From positions 30,192-40,317 of the forward strand of contig BCKQ01000036.1 in assembly GCA_001600695.1 (NCBI GenBank): 10,126 bases of DNA, written 5' to 3'. Below are positions 1-10,126 of the stretch, one piece after another; positions within the stretch are counted from its first letter, which is position 1, and every line of letters starts with the position of its first letter. Below the pieces are notes generated by a model that was not told where the DNA came from, ran no database searches, and was given only the letters and a program-made list of their open reading frames with translations. A program made the position numbers and the translations under genes. Origin of the DNA: Ascoidea asiatica JCM 7603. Lineage: Eukaryota > Fungi > Ascomycota.

Positions 1-1217
1 TCATTGATCCATGGCTCAGGCGCCACAAACCTGGCCAACAGTGGAAATTTTCCTGAAATCACAGGGTAACACACTTTCTTAACTGGATGTTAATAACTTT
101 CCTAATTTGGACTGGTGGTTGAGAATTGAATGAAATTTTTGCTCGTCAAATTCCAGTAGTTAATAAATTTAGACCCACTAATTGTTTTTGCTGAAGATGT
201 AAATGAATTTACTTACTTCAAATGCTTAAACCCTTATATTCAAAAGAAACAAGATTACTGAGACTTCAATGATTTAAAAAACAAATAATGAATTTCAATC
301 TTCTTTCTGTATTTGTTCTTTTGAATACAAAAATAATATTTACAGCTTCGAGAATCAAAAAGCGTGTTTGAATGTACAATTAAAAAGGATGCCTATTCTA
401 TTTTAATAAATGTAGTTTTTATTTCACTTGAATTGATAGTTACTTTACCCAGAAAATTCAGTAACTTGAGTATAAAAAGTTACGTTTTGCAGATGATAAA
501 AGTCACGTTTTTCAAGTTACGTTTGAGGCCGAATTCAAAAAACGTAACCAATTTTTCAGTTGGAAATGCTTGTGCTGCTTTTGATGCTAAATATATTGAT
601 TTAAAAGTAGCTACCTGATTTTGAAGATAGTTTAGAAGTTTGATAACAAAAGAAATGATAATAAAATTTAATAAAAATTAATTATTGTTTGAATAAAAAA
701 TAATTACGAAGATTTTTAAAAGCTGTCATCCATACAGAATCCATTATTGCTGTTATGTTCTGTAATATCATTATTATTATTTGTCATTTGCTTATAATTT
801 CAAATATTTTAAATATTTTACTCCAAACTAAGATGCAGTTCCCATTCATATTCTCTTTTAGTAATCACTTAAAATTAAATTCAACCTTTTATCATCGTTT
901 TTTCATTTCAAATACATCTACAAAATAAAAAACTCCAATTTTAATTATTAATAATCTTTAAAAATTATTATTCAATCAAGATAATAATTATTTTTACGTT
1001 ATTATTCAATTTAACTCCTTTGGATTGAATTAAATCTATTTTAGTTCTATTAAGACTTAATTTAAAAGCTTCTAAAAAATTGACAAATATTAAAAACAAT
1101 AGTAATTTAAATGGCATTTAATAGAATTAAATTAATAAGATTTAAGGATAATTCATATTAAGATTCTGAAATATGAAAAGAATTAATAGAATCAAAATTT
1201 TGAAAAAAAACACATTG

Positions 1218-1395
1218 TCATTTTATTCATAATCTCATTCATCATTTTATTATTATTCTATAATCATTTTATTATTTTTCTATTATCATTTTATTATCAT
1301 TTTCTTATTATTTTATTATTATTTTATTATCATTTTACTATCATGTTTTTTTCATTTTATTATTTTTTAATATTTTATTATTATTCTATTATCAT
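1218..1395. repeat. Degenerate AT-rich minisatellite, unit about ATCATTTTATT
   Basis: Repeated variants of (t)atcattttatt, tattattttatt and tattattctat over about 180 bp, almost devoid of G. Confidence 0.75.
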
Positions 1396-3131
1396 GGAAA
1401 AAATCAATCTAGTTCTTATAAATTATGATATCATTAATTTCATGATTTACTAAGTAACAGCATTTCCCAGTTAAAATAGAAAAATATCCAAATACAAATG
1501 CAAAATAAAGCTGCACAAATAAATAAAAATAAGAAGCTTAGTCCTAGATGATTACGATTATAACTTAAATGAAGTTCTATCAAGTGAATGAATTCGAATG
1601 TTGTTAATGATGCTACTTTAATGAAATAGAAGCTTGAAAGACCAATGAAAGTAATATGAATTATCATTTTTTCTTATGATTTGAATACACGATTGATTGT
1701 AATATATAAGTGGCGCTTATTATTCTTTGAACCATCATTTTTAAGAAATATAACTGACTATTGGTCAGTATTTTTTATTTCTTAATAAAGCTTCCATTGA
1801 TCAATAATAATTATTACTCTGATGTTAGTGGATCATAGGTTATTAGATTGGAATATTATTTAAATTGATTATTAGAATTGGAATTGAAATAAAATTAAAA
1901 TTGAAATGACAATTTTTAAGGCAAATAAAGAATCGTGAAAATTAGCTTTAATATAAGAATTTGAAATAAACTTAGTGAATAATGATGTATTTGATTATTA
2001 AAATTGGATTAATTGATCTGATTATATTGTATTAATTTTATTATATTGCTATGATTGATAGAAATTTCATTATCATTTTTTATTTGATGTTTGCTGATTT
2101 ACGTCTTTTCACTTTGGAAATAATTCTTTTATTCAGTCAAAAGTAAAGAATAAATGGAAACTTCTTTAATTTGTATGTTTGTGCTTCTTTTCTTCTTTTT
2201 TATTGATTTCTTCTGAGATCAACGAATCATCAAATAAATCAATCATTAACTCAAATTATGAATAATCTTTTCTAACTATTTTAGAACTTCTGATCTTCTT
2301 TTTGTGCTTTTTATTTATAATCGCTTATTGTACTACAGTATCTGTTTTTATTTCAACTTCTGTTTTTTTTTTAATCCCATTCTGAAGTCTGTTTCTTATA
2401 TTATACCTTTTTTTCTTTTTATTTAATTTTAAAAAGTGGGTTTAAAATCAATTCAAATTACTTATTATTATGGAATTTCTATTTTAAATGAAGATTAAGG
2501 TAAGGTAAAAAATCAAAAAGAAAAATATGAGAATTAATATTTTTATTTAAAGAAATATGAACCTCATAATTCAAAAAGAAATATGATTACAATTACATTT
2601 TGAAGCAAAGTGTGCTATTGGCTTGATAAGTTCAATTTATTATTCAATAAAAATGTCTTTTAAATAATCTTTCAATCATCAATTAAAAATTTATTAAAAT
2701 AATATCTATTAAATATGTTGCTTTAAAGGTAAAAATTTTTAAGAATTTAGAAAGCTCTTTTGTTATAATATAAACAGGTTCAAGAGAAGTAATTAAATTA
2801 GTTTAAATTTTAAATACTAATTCTATATTATAGACATTTCAAAAGGTAAAGTAATGAATCACAAATATGTGAAGTTGATTTTATCATTACTAAATAAATT
2901 ACCTTATCCTATATTATTCTGATAATAATTTGCTTTGTTCAATTATAGATAATTATAAATGTTTTTTAATTAAATTCAACTTTTCATTAAATTGGACTGT
3001 GATTAATGAATGTATTTCTTTATGAAGTTAAATTCCTTCTCATGTAACTGAATTGTTGTTTATATGCTGTATATTATAGATATTAGAGACTAAGTATTAA
3101 AATGTTATATTACAGAATAGATTGAATATTG

Positions 3132-3157
3132 TATTATATGTTATGTTATGTTAAGTT
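3132..3157. repeat. Short (TATGT)n pentamer repeat just 3' of the DUF4112 stop codon
   Basis: tattatatgttatgttatgttaagtt, in the presumptive 3' UTR/termination zone. Confidence 0.45.
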
Positions 3158-3167
3158 AAATTATGAG

Positions 3168-3740
3168 TTACACCTTCAACTCAGGATCAGATCGATTGAT
3201 TACATTCACTTGTTCATTTAAACTATCTGGACTGATATTATACTTTCGTATCAAGTAATGTTCAAGCATCAAACAATTTCTTGAGTTTGCTTTATATGCC
3301 ATATTTATAATATCACCAACCACTGGAATTAATCCAATACTAAAATCTAAAATAATATTAAACATCATTTTAGATCTGATTTCATTAGGTAAACCATCAT
3401 TAATTTTATTACATTTTTTAATTAATAATAATGCAAAAAAAATGGCAATAAAATCTCCAATAACTGGAATAAGTCCAATTATTCCTGACCAACCTAATTT
3501 AAATCCACAAAGTGAAAAACATAAATCTAATCTATGAGCTTTTCTTCTTACTGATCTTAAAATTTTTGAATCTTCTTTTGATATAATACTAGGAATTCCT
3601 TTCTTTCTTTTACTTCCTTTCTTTTGATAAAATTTTAATTCTGCTTCTGGAATTGGTTCAAAATAAGGATCTTCTTTAGCAACTGTTACTTTACTTCCTA
3701 AGATTTTATTAAGTACTAATTTTTGTGCCAATTGAGCCAT
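3168..3740 (-). CDS. DUF4112-family small membrane protein (190 aa), conserved fungal protein of unknown function
   Basis: Intact ATG-to-TAA ORF with the DUF4112 pattern: basic N-terminus with EDPYFE, then 'R-x-KAHRLD-x-CF-x-LCGFKLGWSGIIGLIPVIGD' and a second 'D-x2-IGLIPVVGDIINMAYKANSRN' repeat, each next to a hydrophobic helix. Confidence 0.9.
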   Translation of the reverse strand: MAQLAQKLVLNKILGSKVTVAKEDPYFEPIPEAELKFYQKKGSKRKKGIPSIISKEDSKILRSVRRKAHRLDLCFSLCGFKLGWSGIIGLIPVIGDFIAIFFALLLIKKCNKINDGLPNEIRSKMMFNIILDFSIGLIPVVGDIINMAYKANSRNCLMLEHYLIRKYNISPDSLNEQVNVINRSDPELKV

Positions 3741-4466
3741 TGAGTTTATTATTTTTAATTAATATATTAAAGTGTATGTGTATGTATATGAATTGAAATA
3801 TCTTTTAGCAACAATGACTTTTTTACTTTACATCTCTTTATTCAAGGAAGAAGAAAATCAGAATAACAAAATCAATTATTTTCAATTCTATTTATATTCT
3901 AAATGTTTATATAATGCTTATTTTTGTTTAATTCAATTAAATTTCATCCATGATCATTGATAATTAAAAAACGTTGCTAGTTTTATCAGTGCTTAATACA
4001 TGTTAACTATGGGTATTGGATGTCCGTTTCCAATTTTTTATCTTTTGAATTCGTGTTTTCACAATCAACAATAAAGGGCTAATTAATTTGTTTCAACATA
4101 AAATAATTCTAAATAATTACTAATATTTATTTTATAAAGCTAAACTTATCAAAATGTTATATCAATAGTGAGTGTGTGGTAGCCTAGCAATCATATGTTT
4201 TACTTAAGATTCAAAAAATATGATTTGTAATAAATTTATAAACTAAAAACTTGATATTATTTACTGATTTCTATGGTGTTTTTTGAACTAAGTATGATTT
4301 ATGTTTTCAAATTCAATAAAATGAAATATCTTAACTTCAATTTTTGTGTGTATATATGAATCGTTGAACTACTTGAGCCTGATAAATAATATTCAAGAGG
4401 TATACTCTAAAATCATGAACTGATGATTGTCTACATTTTAAAGCGGAATAGCATATTCAAATTAAT

Positions 4467-4482
4467 AAAAAAAAAAAAAAAA
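4467..4482. repeat. Poly(dA:dT) tract (A16) in the divergent intergenic region
   Basis: 16 consecutive A about 80 bp upstream of the first CArG-like motif; such tracts are typical nucleosome-disfavouring yeast promoter elements. Confidence 0.6.
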
Positions 4483-4562
4483 TAATACAATTCTGTTTTC
4501 AAATCCAAATAATGCAAGTTTATAATTGAGTTTAAAATATTTCCTAATTAAAGTTTGATTTA

Positions 4563-4581
4563 AAAGTTTCCTATTTGGGAT
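4563..4581 (+). promoter_or_regulatory. Mcm1/MADS-box (CArG-like) motif AAAGTTTCCTATTTGGGAT
   Basis: TTT-CC-N6-GG-A pattern like yeast Mcm1 sites; near-identical to 6035-6053 and 7812-7830; an extra half site TTTCCTAATTA at 4540-4550. Confidence 0.5.
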
Positions 4582-4585
4582 TTGA

Positions 4586-4696
4586 ATAAGAACGTTAAAA
4601 TTAATTGAAAATTATGTAAAGAAATATTATAAATCAATAGAAAATAATCAAAATCAAGAAGGTTATCCAGTTATGGAAAAATCTATTTTATGTTGA
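4586..4696 (+). other. Out-of-frame 5' segment of copy 1 (IRTLKLIENYVKKYYKSIENNQNQEGYPVMEKSILC*)
   Basis: GYPVME (4661-4678) matches FYPSME of copy 2 but lies one frame off the long copy-1 ORF; ATG at 4673. Confidence 0.45.
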
Positions 4697-4907
4697 TGAA
4701 AATAATAATGTTTCATTCAATTATATAACAAAACAATCATCATTTGATTTATCATCAATTATTACTATATTTAATTCTATAATAAAATTAATTTTATATC
4801 ATTTTTTAATTTCTAGTTCTGTTAGAGATGAGGTTTTTAACATATATACATCAAAAGAAAAATATAAAAAATGGTTTGAAGTTTATAATTTTAAATATTT
4901 TAACGAT

Positions 4908-5813
4908 ATGCAAGAGATTAAGTTTGTACTTTTACATTCTTTTTTAATGCTTCAAGATTATTCTAAAGAACTTGAATGGCTAAAAAGTTTAATTAAACAT
5001 GAGTTAATTATATCAGGTAAATATCATTTCATTGATATTGAAGTTAATAAGATTAATTATCAAATCAAATTTGATTATAAATATGAACCTGAAGGGGTAT
5101 TTAGAGGAACTGTTTTTTTTCATGATCAAATCCTTGTGATAATGAATGGAACTTCAGAATCTCAGGTAAATTTTAAATTAATAGATTTTTTAAAAACAAA
5201 TTCAAATTCTTATATAAATATAAAAGATATTAAAACTGATTTTGATCATTTATCAGCTCAATTTACTAAAGATTTTTATAAAAATGAACTCATTGATAGA
5301 ACTTTATGGAATAATTGTTGGAAAAATGTTGAAATTTCATACTTAGAATATCAATTAGGTGGTAGAATTAATTTAATTCCATTAAAAAAAAATGGTGATG
5401 AATTAGCAAATATAGTTATTTGTTGTATTACCAAAAATAATCTGTTATTTTCTGAAAAATTAAGTTATGGATTTGGTTTTGATTATAATGATTCATGTAA
5501 AAGAGCAATTCATCTTGCATCAAAATATTTATCTTCTAATATTGAAAGAAAATCTGTTAAAAGGCAAAATAATTATAAATTTTTACTTAAAGAAGCACAA
5601 CCTAAAAATATTTTATATTTCAAATTACAAAATTCTTCGAATAATCCAAATTATGATACAGCTAAAAATGTTGTTGTTTGTGTTTATAGTAATGATACCA
5701 AATACACTATTTTGGGTGTTGGAATTGACAGATTCTTGGAATTAGCAGTTGAAATAGCTGCAGAAGGATCTCAAAAATATGTTTGCAAAAGTTTTTCTAT
5801 TTTATTTCAATAA
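4908..5813 (+). CDS. Divergent Rnt1/Dcr1-like protein, copy 1: degenerate (probably inactive) RNase III domain plus about three dsRBD-like units; true start probably upstream of 4908
   Basis: The frame is stop-free from 4641. Translation upstream of ATG 4908 gives ...IFNSIIKLILYHFLISSSVRDEVFNIYTSKEKYKKWFEVYNFKYF, resembling the Rnt1-type segment ILNSVMTLIIY...SNEQIKQWSIMYNF (recalled) and copy 2. The C-terminal NVVVCVYSNDTKYTILGVGIDRFLELAVEIAAE resembles the Rnt1 dsRBD ([29 protein letters not shown]). Further dsRBD-like units lie at about 5058-5195 and 5325-5531. Confidence 0.7.
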   Translation: MQEIKFVLLHSFLMLQDYSKELEWLKSLIKHELIISGKYHFIDIEVNKINYQIKFDYKYEPEGVFRGTVFFHDQILVIMNGTSESQVNFKLIDFLKTNSNSYINIKDIKTDFDHLSAQFTKDFYKNELIDRTLWNNCWKNVEISYLEYQLGGRINLIPLKKNGDELANIVICCITKNNLLFSEKLSYGFGFDYNDSCKRAIHLASKYLSSNIERKSVKRQNNYKFLLKEAQPKNILYFKLQNSSNNPNYDTAKNVVVCVYSNDTKYTILGVGIDRFLELAVEIAAEGSQKYVCKSFSILFQ

Positions 5814-6034
5814 TTTCAAGCAAGTTCAAAATTTGCAATCAGAATTTATCATCAATGATCTTTCTCACCTGTAAAGGAAAGTAAATAAAGGCCTATCACG
5901 CGGAGATATCAAATGGAACTAGTCTAAACAGTACTGCTCTAAACATCTGCTCTATCTTCTCCATCTGCGTTTTTCTTATTTCTATTTTTGATTAAATCTA
6001 ATTATTTGGGTTTTGGAAACGATACTATGAAATT

Positions 6035-6053
6035 AAAGTTTCCTAAATAGGAT
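6035..6053 (+). promoter_or_regulatory. Mcm1/MADS-box (CArG) motif AAAGTTTCCTAAATAGGAT
   Basis: Perfect CC(A/T)6GG core (CCTAAATAGG) with a TTT flank, about 205 bp upstream of ATG 6259. Confidence 0.55.
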
Positions 6054-6258
6054 AGTTTCTAATTCTAGTGAAAAAAAACTTATTAGTGCTCAAAATATCG
6101 TTGATTGACAAATTCTATAAAATTTCAAATGAACAAGGAATAAGTAAGTATGAAAATTTCAATAATTCTTTTTTTTTGCTTTTTCTTTTTCTTTTTCTTT
6201 TACCTATTTTTCAACTTAACTTCATAATTTAAATTCTTCTCATTTTACAAATTAGTAT

Positions 6259-6438
6259 ATGTTTACGATGCTTGCATTACCAAAAAATGGGCAGAGAAAT
6301 GATAATAACACTTTAGAATTAGCTGATATTAAATTAATTAAAACTTATTTAATGAAAAATCATCTTCAAACAAAACGAGTTTTCTTGAGTTATCTAAAGC
6401 TAAAAATCATGAAGTTACTTCTCAATCAAAGAATATAA
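6259..6438 (+). other. Out-of-frame upstream ORF (59 aa), probable N-terminal segment of copy 2 separated by a -1 frame break
   Basis: ATG 6259 gives MFTMLALPKNGQRNDNNTLELADIKLIKTYLMKNH...RI*, overlapping the main copy-2 frame at 6342-6438. KLIKTYLMK resembles KLIENYVKK upstream of copy 1 (4598-4624). Confidence 0.4.
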
Positions 6439-6524
6439 ACGATAATTCTAATGGATTGCAAATAGAGTATGATATTGATAAAAATTCAAATAATTTTATT
6501 GAAATTAATGATTTTTATCCATCT

Positions 6525-7640
6525 ATGGAAGTATTAAAAGATCCAGAAATATTAATTAAGTTATTTAAATTCAACCTGATAAAAGAAGTGGTTATTGATC
6601 AAAGTTGGAAAAAGGAGTTATGTGAATTATGGGATAACATTTTCAAAACAATTTTAAATTCTCAATTGTATTCATTTAAATTAAGTTCTTCTGAATTTCA
6701 ATTGTTAGCTTCTCAGTTATCCTCCAAAAAAAAGTTTAAAAAATGGTCAGATATTTATAATTTTAAATATTTTCTATATTGTGATTTTTTTGGTTATTTT
6801 GATCGAAAATATAATGAAAATTATGAAATAAATATTCCCTTAGATGCTTCCATGATTTTTTTAAAAATGTTTCATGGTGCTTTACATAAACAAAATAAAA
6901 TTAAAGAAGAATTTTGGATTAATCAATTAATTGAGCATGAATTAAAATTAATGGGTTTTCAACATGAAGGTGTTAAAAAATTGGAAATCAAACAATCTTA
7001 TAGCCAAACTGAATATACTTCAAATTCAACATTAAAATCCAAAACAGATATAGATGAAGTTGAAATAAATGGAATAAAGTTAAGTTTTAAAACTCATTTC
7101 AAAGAAATATATATAAACAGGTTCTGGAATACAGTTTATAAATATTGGTTTAAGACTAACAATTATAGCAAAGAAATTAGTTACAATAGTGATGAGTTGG
7201 ATAATGATAATACTGATAATGATAATGATAACTTTTATCAAGGTAAATTAATAATATTAGATTGTGAGATTTTAAGACTTGAAGGACCTACAAAAACAGA
7301 TTTAATTTATTTATTCAAAAAGTATATTAAATTAAACCCAAACTTAATTCTATCAAAATTACAAATATATTTAAACAAATTATCTTGTGAATTAACTAAA
7401 TCTCTTCATGATTTTAAGTTTGAATTGCAAAAACTGAATAATTGCACAACCTCTGTAGTTGCTTGTGTTCTTGATTGCGAAGGCAGTGAAATAATTTTAG
7501 GAGTTGGTGAAGATAAATGGCAACATAAAGCTGCTAGTATTAGTGCAAAAATAGGATTTAATAAACTAAATAGATTTATAATTCCAAAATTTGGCAGGTC
7601 TAGTTTTGATTCTCATGGATTCAAGATTTTAAATTACTAA
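6525..7640 (+). CDS. Divergent Rnt1/Dcr1-like protein, copy 2: degenerate (probably inactive) RNase III domain plus about two dsRBD-like units
   Basis: Frame open 6342-7640; the track start at 6456 is TTG and the first in-frame ATG is 6525. Motifs are collinear with recalled Rnt1: FYPSMEVLKDPEILIKLF ~ WPPKLPEIQDLAIRARVF; KKELCELWDNIFK ~ NERLEFLGDSILN; SSSEFQLLASQLSSKKKFKKWSDIYNF ~ SEGQLSTLRMNLVSNEQIKQWSIMYNF; MIFLKMFHGAL ~ ADVFEAYIGGL; C-terminal dsRBD-like SVVACVLDCEGSEIILGVGEDKWQHKAASISAK. Paralogy with copy 1 is clear (KKWxxxYNFKYF, WxxxLIxHEL, VVxCV..ILGVGxD). Confidence 0.75.
   Translation: MEVLKDPEILIKLFKFNLIKEVVIDQSWKKELCELWDNIFKTILNSQLYSFKLSSSEFQLLASQLSSKKKFKKWSDIYNFKYFLYCDFFGYFDRKYNENYEINIPLDASMIFLKMFHGALHKQNKIKEEFWINQLIEHELKLMGFQHEGVKKLEIKQSYSQTEYTSNSTLKSKTDIDEVEINGIKLSFKTHFKEIYINRFWNTVYKYWFKTNNYSKEISYNSDELDNDNTDNDNDNFYQGKLIILDCEILRLEGPTKTDLIYLFKKYIKLNPNLILSKLQIYLNKLSCELTKSLHDFKFELQKLNNCTTSVVACVLDCEGSEIILGVGEDKWQHKAASISAKIGFNKLNRFIIPKFGRSSFDSHGFKILNY
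7200..7232 (+). repeat. Coding (GATAAT)n microsatellite encoding DNDNTDNDNDN in copy 2
   Basis: gataatgataatactgataatgataatgataac, in frame within the ORF. Confidence 0.7.
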
Positions 7641-7811
7641 TTTTTCAATTAATTTCAATATCTAGAAAGTATGACTTTGTATTTCTATAAGTCTTGCCTC
7701 TAAATTTTGATAAGTTTTCTGTCTTCAATAAGAATCTGATTTAGACCAAATTGAAAGAGAGTTTAGTTTTTTGTGTTTTTTCTGATTTCATCGGATACTT
7801 TGTTGGATCTG

Positions 7812-7830
7812 ATCCCATTTAGGAAACTTT
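7812..7830 (-). promoter_or_regulatory. Mcm1/MADS-box (CArG-like) motif, reverse complement AAAGTTTCCTAAATGGGAT
   Basis: One mismatch to the 6035 motif and two to the 4563 motif; lies between copy 2 and relic copy 3. Confidence 0.5.
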
Positions 7831-8099
7831 TAAATTTCAGCTAGCCTAGTTAGTGGGGGGAAATAGGCGATAGGCAATAGTCAAAATAGAAATCAGACCT
7901 TCCTTTAGAAATTATTATAACTTGATGATATTTTTCTCACTTGAATTCAAACTAAAAGTGAAATTGGGATTCTTCTCAAGAAGCTAAATCTTTTAACTCA
8001 GAAACTAATAAAATGGTATGTAACCCTATAAAAAAAAAAAAATCTGAAATTATATAAAATGGCTACACTAAATTTTAGGAACAAAAAGAAAATTACTAA

Positions 8100-8636
8100 G
8101 ATAAAAAATTACCTATCGTTATCGAACAATGGAATAAAACTCAAATCCTACTTTTAAAGAAATTGAAGTCAGGGCCGAAAAAAATCAAACAGAATGATAA
8201 TAGAAGCAGCAATTAGAGTAATAGTTAAATCGAAAATGATTCTTAGAGCTATAGGTTTTTTTTACTGAATAATGTGGAAAATCTCAAAATTTGAAGTAAT
8301 TGAGAAAAAAGGAACTATTAAACTAATCAAAACTAAAAAGTTGTCGAATTATAGAAGTTAATTTATACTTTCTATGCAAAATAAATTTAAATCATATTTG
8401 GAGGTAATGAAATCTGAGATTATTCGTGATATTAATATGCATTTAGACAAATTGTCAAATAAGTTGATCAGTATTTTTCACAAATGGTTAATTTATACAA
8501 ATGGCAACTTTATCTTGATTTATGATCTAAGATGTTTAAGATTGGGTATTTAAAATATATTTTTGGTGAATTGAGTTGTTGTAGACTATATCTATTAGTA
8601 ATAATAGGATACCAAAAGAAGTGCTACATTAATTAA
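8100..8636 (+). pseudogene. Decayed copy 3 of the RNase III/dsRBD-like family
   Basis: 8374-8553 encodes ...FKSYLEVMKSEIIRDINMHLDKLSNKLISIFHK, aligning with copy 2 FKKYIKLNPNLILSKLQIYLNKLSCELTKSLHD. After a frameshift, 8541-8570 IGYLKYIFGE aligns with copy 1 ISYLEYQLGG. In-frame stop at 8359. Boundaries approximate. Confidence 0.5.
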
Positions 8637-9007
8637 AAGTTCGAATTGATAATTCTAATCAATTTCTTCAGGAGTTTTACATATAAACTTAAATAATATT
8701 ATAAAGAAAAAAAAACAATTTTAATGGAACACACTTCACTTTTGGCTACAAAAGATTGAGAAAATAACTGATGTTACTTATATGTTCATACCAAGTGTTT
8801 AGCAATTTATTGGAATCAAAAGTGATTTCATTAATTTAATTATTATTTCAGTTTCTTTGTTACTTTGTTGCTTTGTTACTTTTGAGTTTTTTGGTTCCTG
8901 TCATGATATTTAAATTTGAGAGTTCCAACTTTGAAGCAAATAACCAAAATTTTGATTGAAATGATGATATTTTTTTAAAATTTTTTTTAAAGATTTTTTG
9001 TCAATAG

Positions 9008-9330
9008 TATTATCAATACAGTTCTTATTAAAATTTTCATTGAATATATAACTATTATTAACACAGTTGACTGTGAAGGAATCACAGAGAGACTTGCTCA
9101 AATTAATCTTGTAAATAATGTTAGGTATTAGCATTTCTTGAAGTAGCTTCACAATTGCAAATATACATTGAAGAAATAGCATACAAGAAAAATAAAAAAT
9201 CTCCAATTTCCAATGAAACAACTCCAAAATATGGATATTATTCATTTTATTTTGATCCGCTATCTTTCAAAAGAAAAAAAATATATAAAGATGAAATTTT
9301 TTGCCATAGACAGGATTCAATTCACAAAAG
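9008..9330 (+). pseudogene. Possible decayed copy 4 of the same family (dsRBD-region relic)
   Basis: 9063-9125 TVDCEGITERLAQINLVNNVR ~ copy 1 LVIMNGTSESQVNFKLIDFLK and copy 2 ILRLEGPTKTDL. After a frame change, ASQLQIYIEEIAY (from 9146) ~ copy 2 LSKLQIYLNKLSC. Spacing is collinear, with several stops and frameshifts. Confidence 0.35.
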
Positions 9331-10126
9331 GCCCAAAAAATTTACAAAATATTCTATTTTTCAACAATATTGAATTTACTATACCGAAAAAAAAAGAACT
9401 TAAAAACAAAACTCAAAACAAACTGTTGCTGAATAACACCATTTTTTTATTTTTCAATAATTTGTAATCAAAACCCATTTTGGACCAATCCTTTTTACTA
9501 TTAAAAAGAGAATATACTTAAAAAGATGTTCATTTGTTAACATATTTCAATCGATCTGGAAATGATTTCGATGTTTCGAAATTATTTTTAAATGCAATAT
9601 AATTAAATGAATAGAAATAGCAAAAGTTGCATTCGAGTTTCTTTCACGTATCACGTCTATTCTTCAATATACCAGTACTTTTTGTATTAACTACAGTTAT
9701 CCACTAGCATTTTATTATTTTCTAAGATCATGCTATTTTGTATAGATCTTTTGATATCTTAACTAGATAGACAATAGAGATATGCTGCATGTACATTAAA
9801 TGGTTCTTATTAACCAGTTGTCTTTTAGTAATTGCAGATCCATTCATTCCACAATTTATTCATTCAATCAATGGATAATAGAATTTTTTTTAAATAGTGA
9901 CAATTGAATTGCATTTTGTGAGCTTCGATTTGCCATATTGAAAACACTGGCTAGAGAAAGTAGTTTCTGTGGCCGTTTTTGGTGTCTGCAAAACCCAGAC
10001 TCCTTCCTAATCGGGCCTCTTCAATGCTCTCCCTCAAATCGATTATAATACTTTCAGCCAACAATAAAAGAATGCTCCACAACAATAGTGAGTTTGGAAT
10101 TTCATTAAACTAATATTCACACAATA

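Follow-up and report, generated by a model that had tools for sequence, protein, structure and literature searches.

Two tandem, fast-diverging genes of probable RNase III descent in Ascoidea asiatica, one of them disabled

The locus and its two gene copies

The DNA described here is a stretch of 10,126 nucleotides (nt) from Ascoidea asiatica JCM 7603 (contig BCKQ01000036.1, positions 30,192 to 40,317 of the forward strand), which is called the window throughout; all coordinates are counted from its first letter. The window has a G+C content of about 23% and contains three convincing genes. Its main feature is a pair of tandem, co-oriented genes, copy 1 and copy 2, whose proteins bear a marginal but specific resemblance to Rnt1p, the RNase III of Saccharomyces cerevisiae. 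The positions of the two genes are as follows.

4641-5813, forward strand: gene copy 1, a 390-codon open frame that is a pseudogene in this strain, with no usable start
6525-7640, forward strand: gene copy 2, an intact open reading frame (ORF) of 371 amino acids with its ATG at 6525

The frame of copy 2 is open from 6342, giving 432 codons up to 7640, and is bounded upstream by a stop codon at 6339. When the chance of a stop is taken as 0.09 per codon in this composition (23% GC), frames of 390 and 432 codons would stay open by chance with probabilities near 1e-17 and 1e-18, so neither frame can be attributed to chance. The two copies are distant but real paralogs. BLASTP aligns them in two collinear high-scoring segment pairs, with 35% identity over 109 amino acids (E 5e-5) and 35% over 49 amino acids (E 2e-4), and tblastn gives an E-value of 1e-8. 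The best-conserved stretch between them is a 51-nt DNA box, 84% identical, located at 4851 in copy 1 and at 6723 in copy 2. An earlier reading made from the letters alone (the sequence-only reading) had described two long, co-oriented and diverged paralogous ORFs at this place, and the BLASTP and tblastn alignments, the 51-nt box and the lengths of the open frames all bear this description out.

Similar sequence is also present upstream of both ATGs, at 4586-4672 and 6269-6524, where LKLIENYV corresponds to IKLIKTYL and YPVME to YPSME. These segments lie in other frames or behind stop codons, and on reading the sequence no intron of the form GTATGT...TACTAAC...AG was found that would join them to either ORF. 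They may represent what is left of an N-terminal domain that was lost, or a conserved 5' leader.

The RNase III-like domain

The N-terminal half of each copy contains a region that can be aligned with the RNase III domain of Rnt1p.

6618-6932, forward strand: RNase III-like domain of copy 2, in which LCELWD, KKWSDIYNF and WINQLI correspond to LEFLGD, KQWSIMYNF and WLRKLA of Rnt1p
4767-5027, forward strand: RNase III-like remnant of copy 1, containing a KKWxxxYNFKYF box

A profile built from the two N-terminal halves, when compared with the 177,635 distinct sequences of the PDB, matches exactly two chains, 4oog_C and 5t16_A (E 0.055, 16.9 bits), both of which are S. cerevisiae Rnt1p. The alignment is collinear over about 100 residues and runs from the signature Asp through SILNSVMTLIIY and LVSNEQIKQWSIMYNF to ADVFEAYIGG and KWLRKLA. 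Copy 2 alone retrieves the same top matches with an E-value of 0.26, and LCELWD is again placed on LEFLGD. By a rough estimate, RNase III chains make up a tiny share of the PDB. Since such chains are few and the family had been predicted beforehand, the marginal match to Rnt1p is taken as real. Both copies also contain the Rnt1-type box (LVSN..IKQWSIMYNF), which reads LSSKKKFKKWSDIYNFKYF in copy 2 and TSKEKYKKWFEVYNFKYF in copy 1, both of them aligned to LVSNEQIKQWSIMYNFHEKL of Rnt1p.

Comparison by protein language model points in the same direction. The top neighbour of copy 2 is an Ascomycota dsrm cluster (score 0.91, with 174 of 256 features shared, the mark set by the tool being 170), and it is followed in the list by several Ribonuclease_3 clusters. 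For copy 1, which is only about a third identical to copy 2, the neighbours are again dsrm and Ribonuclease_3, with a weak score of 0.79. In hhalign the comparison with E. coli RNase III is not significant (probability below 1%), and its register is that of the Rnt1p alignment, with IFKTILNSQLYS placed against ILSYVIANALYH directly after the signature. The 80 E. coli rnc loci gathered for a comparator profile are 96-100% identical, and they added nothing.

On these grounds the two proteins probably have an RNase III fold. The claim of the sequence-only reading that they are of the Rnt1/Dcr1-like type, with an RNase III domain and a domain that binds double-stranded RNA (dsRBD), is supported in a marginal but specific manner by the match to Rnt1p alone in the PDB, by the language-model clusters and by the model of the C-terminal module described below. 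Counted from the ATG at 6525, copy 2 has only about 30 residues before the signature, and it appears to lack an N-terminal dimerisation domain.

The catalytic site

The four carboxylates of the active site, which in E. coli RNase III are E41, D45, D114 and E117, can be located in copy 2 through the alignment with Rnt1p.

6621-6623, forward strand: first catalytic Glu, replaced by Cys33 in copy 2
6633-6635, forward strand: first catalytic Asp, kept as Asp37 in copy 2
6843-6845, forward strand: second catalytic Asp, kept as Asp107 in copy 2
6852-6854, forward strand: second catalytic Glu, replaced by Met110 in copy 2

On this mapping, which depends on an alignment of low accuracy, the two Asp residues of copy 2 remain and the two Glu residues are gone. 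The signature itself is degenerate, reading KELCELWD where the intact form is ERLEFLGD. In copy 1 a Ser occupies the position of the first Asp, and the stretch that would hold the second catalytic pair is deleted. In bacterial RNase III, changes of the second Glu abolish cleavage while the binding of double-stranded RNA (dsRNA) is retained. Since this Glu is replaced in copy 2, the protein is predicted to bind dsRNA without cutting it. With its degenerate signature and its incomplete set of four carboxylates, copy 2 is predicted from its sequence not to be an active RNase III. That the copies are non-catalytic, as had been proposed before, accords with the replacement of both Glu residues in copy 2 and with the loss of the site in copy 1.

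The C-terminal module

A second module with the features of a dsRBD is located at the C-terminal end of copy 2.

7422-7571, forward strand: dsRBD-like core of copy 2, three strands and a helix containing ILGVGEDKWQHKAASISAK; a further helix precedes this core at about 7338-7376

In the low-confidence AlphaFold model of the last 109 residues of copy 2, the chain follows an alpha-beta-beta-beta-alpha order, with helices at residues 10-22 and 68-87 of this segment and strands at 38-42, 46-54 and 60-67. An exhaustive structure search with VIA gives a best Z score of 4.2, scores of about 4 being within the noise, and some 16 of the top 50 rows are dsRBDs, belonging to HYL1, DRB2, DRB4, DCL1, DCL3, ADAR1, ADAR2, PKR, NF90, TARBP2 and HEN1. 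The hhalign comparison places SEIILGVGEDK on SEPVVGTGSSR, the junction of strand beta3 and helix alpha2 in the E. coli dsRBD, in an alignment that is not significant. Against the PDB sequences, neither the C-terminal profile nor the copy 1 middle module matched a dsRBD, and an internal-repeat test for further dsRBD-like modules gave no significant match. The presence of a C-terminal dsRBD in copy 2 is probable, with slightly less assurance than the RNase III fold.

Alternative assignments of the two proteins

Several results weigh against the assignment to RNase III, to which the uncertain catalytic mapping must be added. Searches of Pfam and NCBIfam with the whole proteins and with five or six sub-pieces gave no Ribonuclease_3 or dsrm match up to E 10, which was also the outcome of the HMMER check of these two families that had been suggested beforehand. 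A word-indexed protein search with copy 2 and with a two-sequence profile returned no relatives. When 1.84 billion representatives were searched in full with HMMER, the only matches were two of low complexity, both to an Asn-rich stretch. Taken alone, the E-value of 0.055 for the N-terminal profile is marginal; copy 1 alone does not match Rnt1p in the PDB, and PDB sequence searches with the whole proteins and with the whole-length profile gave nothing. The AlphaFold model of the whole of copy 2 has a predicted local distance difference test score (pLDDT) of 32 and is unusable. For the C-terminal module this score is only 43.6, Foldseek returned nothing significant, and the Atlas shape search found no dsrm cluster. 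Of the structural check that had been proposed with AlphaFold and Foldseek, the dsRBD topology was therefore obtained in a model of low confidence, and the clear Foldseek match and a usable whole-protein model were not. Finally, no RNA runs were found among the public runs.

Much of this evidence would also be expected if the two genes belonged to an orphan family unrelated to RNase III, whose likeness to Rnt1p and to dsRBDs came from chance and a shared AT-rich composition. The absence of Pfam and NCBIfam matches, PDB E-values no lower than 0.055 and 0.26, an hhalign probability below 1% against E. coli RNase III and the poor AlphaFold models all favour this explanation, and several language-model neighbours of copy 2 are AT-rich giant-virus clusters. 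It is nevertheless improbable, since the single PDB protein matched is a member of the family that had been predicted, and the match covers 100 collinear residues including the two most typical motifs of that protein. In addition, both copies have RNase III and dsrm neighbours even though they are only about a third identical, the same register is found in three independent comparisons, and the best structural rows show a strong enrichment of dsRBDs.

The fold and the domain order also recall the mitoribosomal proteins mL44 and mL57, whose RNase III fold is dead and may or may not be accompanied by a dsRBD. A diverged member of this group would have the same class of architecture, and the top language-model cluster is a 253-residue Ascomycota dsrm family of no assigned identity. 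Such an origin is barely credible, since the PDB matches up to E 10 include no mitoribosome chain whereas Rnt1p was matched, and the KxWSxxYNF box resembles that of Rnt1. Copies that are both tandem and dispersed and are often broken, as described below, would also be unexpected for a single-copy ribosomal protein gene.

The shared upstream motif and the downstream DNA

A 19-nt motif, AAAGTTTCCTAWWTRGGAT, occurs upstream of both genes and once more, in inverted orientation, downstream of copy 2.

4563-4581, forward strand: shared motif AAAGTTTCCTAWWTRGGAT, first of three, 92 nt upstream of the copy 1 ATG
6035-6053, forward strand: shared motif AAAGTTTCCTAWWTRGGAT, second of three, 472 nt upstream of the copy 2 ATG
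7812-7830, reverse strand: shared motif AAAGTTTCCTAWWTRGGAT, third of three, inverted, 172 nt downstream of the copy 2 stop

These three exact matches in the window compare with 0.01 expected, and the similarity extends to about 26 nt. The core of the motif, CC(A/T)6GG, together with its TTTCC flank, has what we take to be the form of a putative Mcm1/SRF-type site. A second, partial CArG-like box (TTTCCTAATTAAAG) is located at 4537-4553, 10 nt upstream of the first motif.

The inverted motif at 7812-7830 is the sole positive sign of a third unit. The sequence-only reading had placed two further relics of the family at 8100-8636 and 9008-9330, making four tandem copies, and similarity in this part of the window is at the level of chance by three methods. 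A profile hidden Markov model (HMM) of both copies, run against the six frames of 7641-10126, gives scores near or below zero, no higher than those of control regions. A frameshift-tolerant Smith-Waterman comparison yields one match for the supposed third copy, between 8386-8481 and residues of about 325-356 of copy 2 (counted from 6342); its score of 51 stands against 37 +/- 4.4 for 40 dinucleotide shuffles, and reverse-complement controls of the same DNA reach 53-57. In the region of the supposed fourth copy (9008-9330, searched over 8900-9500), the Smith-Waterman score is at the mean of the shuffles. The two best-conserved DNA boxes have downstream matches no better than chance. The window contains two copies; the existence of a third is doubtful, and there is no fourth. 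The trace of the third is the following.

8386-8487, forward strand: doubtful third-copy trace, a short stretch resembling the helix that precedes the C-terminal dsRBD-like core of copy 2 (tblastn E 0.68)

On the opposite strand, a 111-codon ORF at 8910-9245 overlaps the supposed fourth relic; it matches no family and is a candidate small gene.

Disabled copies and differences between strains

The contigs of three public DNA runs were compared with the window over 4300-9600. Two of the runs, from what is likely the source sample, match it exactly; in the third, which comes from another sample, most of the differences fall within copy 1. In the window, the ATG of copy 1 that is homologous to that of copy 2 lies at 4673-4675 and is out of frame, the next in-frame ATG being at 4908. 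In the other sample, 26 extra nt after 4676 bring the ATG at 4673 into frame, and the resulting MEILLNSKLLKNLFYVDENNN can be aligned well with MEVLKDPEILIKLFKFNL of copy 2. Since these bases restore the frame, the strain of the window has a frameshifting deletion of 26 nt. The copy 1 of the other sample has lesions of its own. Positions 4752-4922 are missing from it (171 nt, or 57 codons, among them the best-conserved box), 6 nt are inserted after 5236, and there are six substitutions, namely one nonsense change (Y234*, TAC>TAA, at 5342), four missense changes and one synonymous change. Since the two samples carry different disabling lesions, copy 1 is a pseudogene in both, and it is probably a recently disabled paralog.

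The differences are concentrated in this gene. Substitutions between the samples number 6 in 1002 nt of copy 1 and 2 in 3979 nt of the rest of the stretch (Fisher p 0.0013). Relaxed constraint alone is not sufficient to explain such a density next to spacers that are equally unconstrained; ectopic gene conversion from other members of the family, or the persistence of old haplotypes, may lie behind it. Insertions and deletions between the samples number three in copy 1 (about 1 kb) and one in the roughly 4 kb that comprise copy 2 and flanking DNA. Copy 2 is identical in the source sample and differs in the other at two places, 6733 and 7366, by K131M (numbered from 6342) and I342T.

Additional members of the family exist outside the window. 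All three runs contain short contigs, at about threefold local depth, that are 89% identical to 6511-6763. Their frame is broken by one base inserted after 6644, and Asn takes the place of Asp37 (D37N). All assemblies break at 6736-6763. Together, the breaks and the diverged contigs of about threefold depth indicate further, closer paralogs elsewhere in the genome, at least some of which are broken. One of the contigs of about threefold depth runs on into 36 unrelated bases, followed by a weak match to 5454-5488. The proposal of a family undergoing birth, death and pseudogenisation is strengthened, since copy 1 carries different lesions in the two samples and frameshifted paralogs are found elsewhere.

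Lesions of this kind are also what would be seen in a decaying family of no present function, in which the products of an old burst of duplications of a Cdl1/Dcr1-like gene would be wearing away neutrally, copy 2 being just the member that has so far escaped breakage. Copy 1 is null in both samples through different lesions, the extra paralogs are frameshifted, and the region is poor in genes and has lost the synteny around its DUF4112 gene. Of the two changes by which copy 2 differs from strain to strain, both are missense and neither is synonymous, which favours neutral decay and counts against the interpretation preferred below. Decay of the whole family is still unlikely, since an open frame of 432 codons in DNA of 23% GC would be very improbable without selection or a very recent origin. 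The upstream motif is also exact at three places, and the density of differences between strains is tenfold lower in copy 2 than in copy 1.

Relation to known inactive RNase III proteins and possible function

The interpretation that best accommodates these observations, with a probability of roughly 0.6, is that copy 1 and copy 2 are two tandem members of a lineage-specific, very fast-evolving family derived from an RNase III of class 2 and of the Rnt1/Dcr1 type, and that copy 2 is a dead member of it. Budding yeasts have been described with one or two genes of the RNase III family, these being Rnt1, Dcr1 and, in the Candida clade, the dead Cdl1. In the open-access literature no report was found of dead RNase III expanded in this way.

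Three known systems offer useful comparisons. In the Candida clade, Cdl1 is an RNase III without activity, with altered metal-binding residues and no known function; it arose by duplication in the Rnt1/Dcr1 lineage (PMC3579876, PMC11047096). Like copy 2, it is a budding-yeast protein of the RNase III family that is presumed to be catalytically inactive. However, Cdl1 is described as a single gene in each genome, and ordinary searches recognise it as an RNase III, whereas the family here has two tandem copies and more elsewhere, is rich in pseudogenes and is invisible to Pfam. With about 30 residues before the signature, copy 2 also seems, unlike Cdl1, to be without an N-terminal domain. Rnt1p of S. 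cerevisiae (PDB 4OOG and 5T16) is the only solved protein that was matched, and copy 2 resembles it in having a C-terminal dsRBD-like module after the RNase III domain. Rnt1p differs in that it is active, single-copy and essential for the processing of rRNA and snoRNA, while copy 2 has both catalytic Glu residues replaced, a degenerate signature and a sequence too diverged for Pfam. The third comparison is with KREPB6-8 of the trypanosome RNA-editing complexes, which are degenerate RNase III proteins that function obligately in dimers with active RNase III endonucleases (PMC9508840). These proteins have likewise lost catalytic residues and provide a functional analogy for the mechanism proposed below, but they belong to an unrelated lineage and pathway.

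A mechanism can be outlined on this basis. Copy 2 would have kept the helical RNase III scaffold and the C-terminal dsRBD-like module and lost both catalytic Glu residues, and it would be expected to bind dsRNA without cutting it, as the Cdl1 of Candida may do. RNase III domains function in dimeric form. Homodimers of the dead protein, unable to cleave, could clamp dsRNA or shield it; alternatively, the protein could pair with the one active RNase III of the cell and block or alter its cutting, by analogy with the trypanosome editosomes. Transcription of the copies might be co-ordinated through the shared Mcm1-like motif upstream of them. That an expanded, co-regulated family of dead Rnt1/Dicer-like proteins would serve as dsRNA decoys, sensors or inhibitory partners against dsRNA viruses, killer elements or retroelements, as the sequence-only reading had envisaged in part, is a tentative and quite unlikely proposal.

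If a genome with many dead copies is confirmed, it would mean that an inactive branch of RNase III can diversify. The copies are both tandem and dispersed, diverge quickly, vary in integrity from strain to strain and have a promoter motif in common, and they would form a natural allele series for asking what a dead RNase III does. The family escapes ordinary domain searches altogether, so that comparable expansions may have gone unnoticed in further AT-rich yeast genomes. A role in conflict with dsRNA elements, if true, would give fungi a novel type of RNA-based defence or counter-defence.

Surroundings of the locus

The DUF4112 gene is located at 3168-3740 on the reverse strand (Pfam E 3e-37). 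The closest relatives of its product are found in budding yeasts, with 57% identity in Clavispora lusitaniae and 60-61% in two further yeast assemblies, which places the organism among the Saccharomycotina as an AT-rich member. In those relatives the gene belongs to a conserved block in the order FHA, Coq4, DUF4112, a small ORF and GGA. No trace of the proteins that flank DUF4112 there (Coq4, GGA, FHA and others) was found within the window, so the locus lies at a break of synteny, in gene-poor DNA. No tRNA and no Rfam RNA family was found in the window.

At the far end of the window, over 9900-10126, the G+C content climbs; no frame is open to the end and no gene is recognised there. At the near end, the 3 kb or so from 1 to 3167 has a G+C content of 16-25% and no ORF of more than 84 codons, and an 11/22-nt tandem array is located at 1214-1395.

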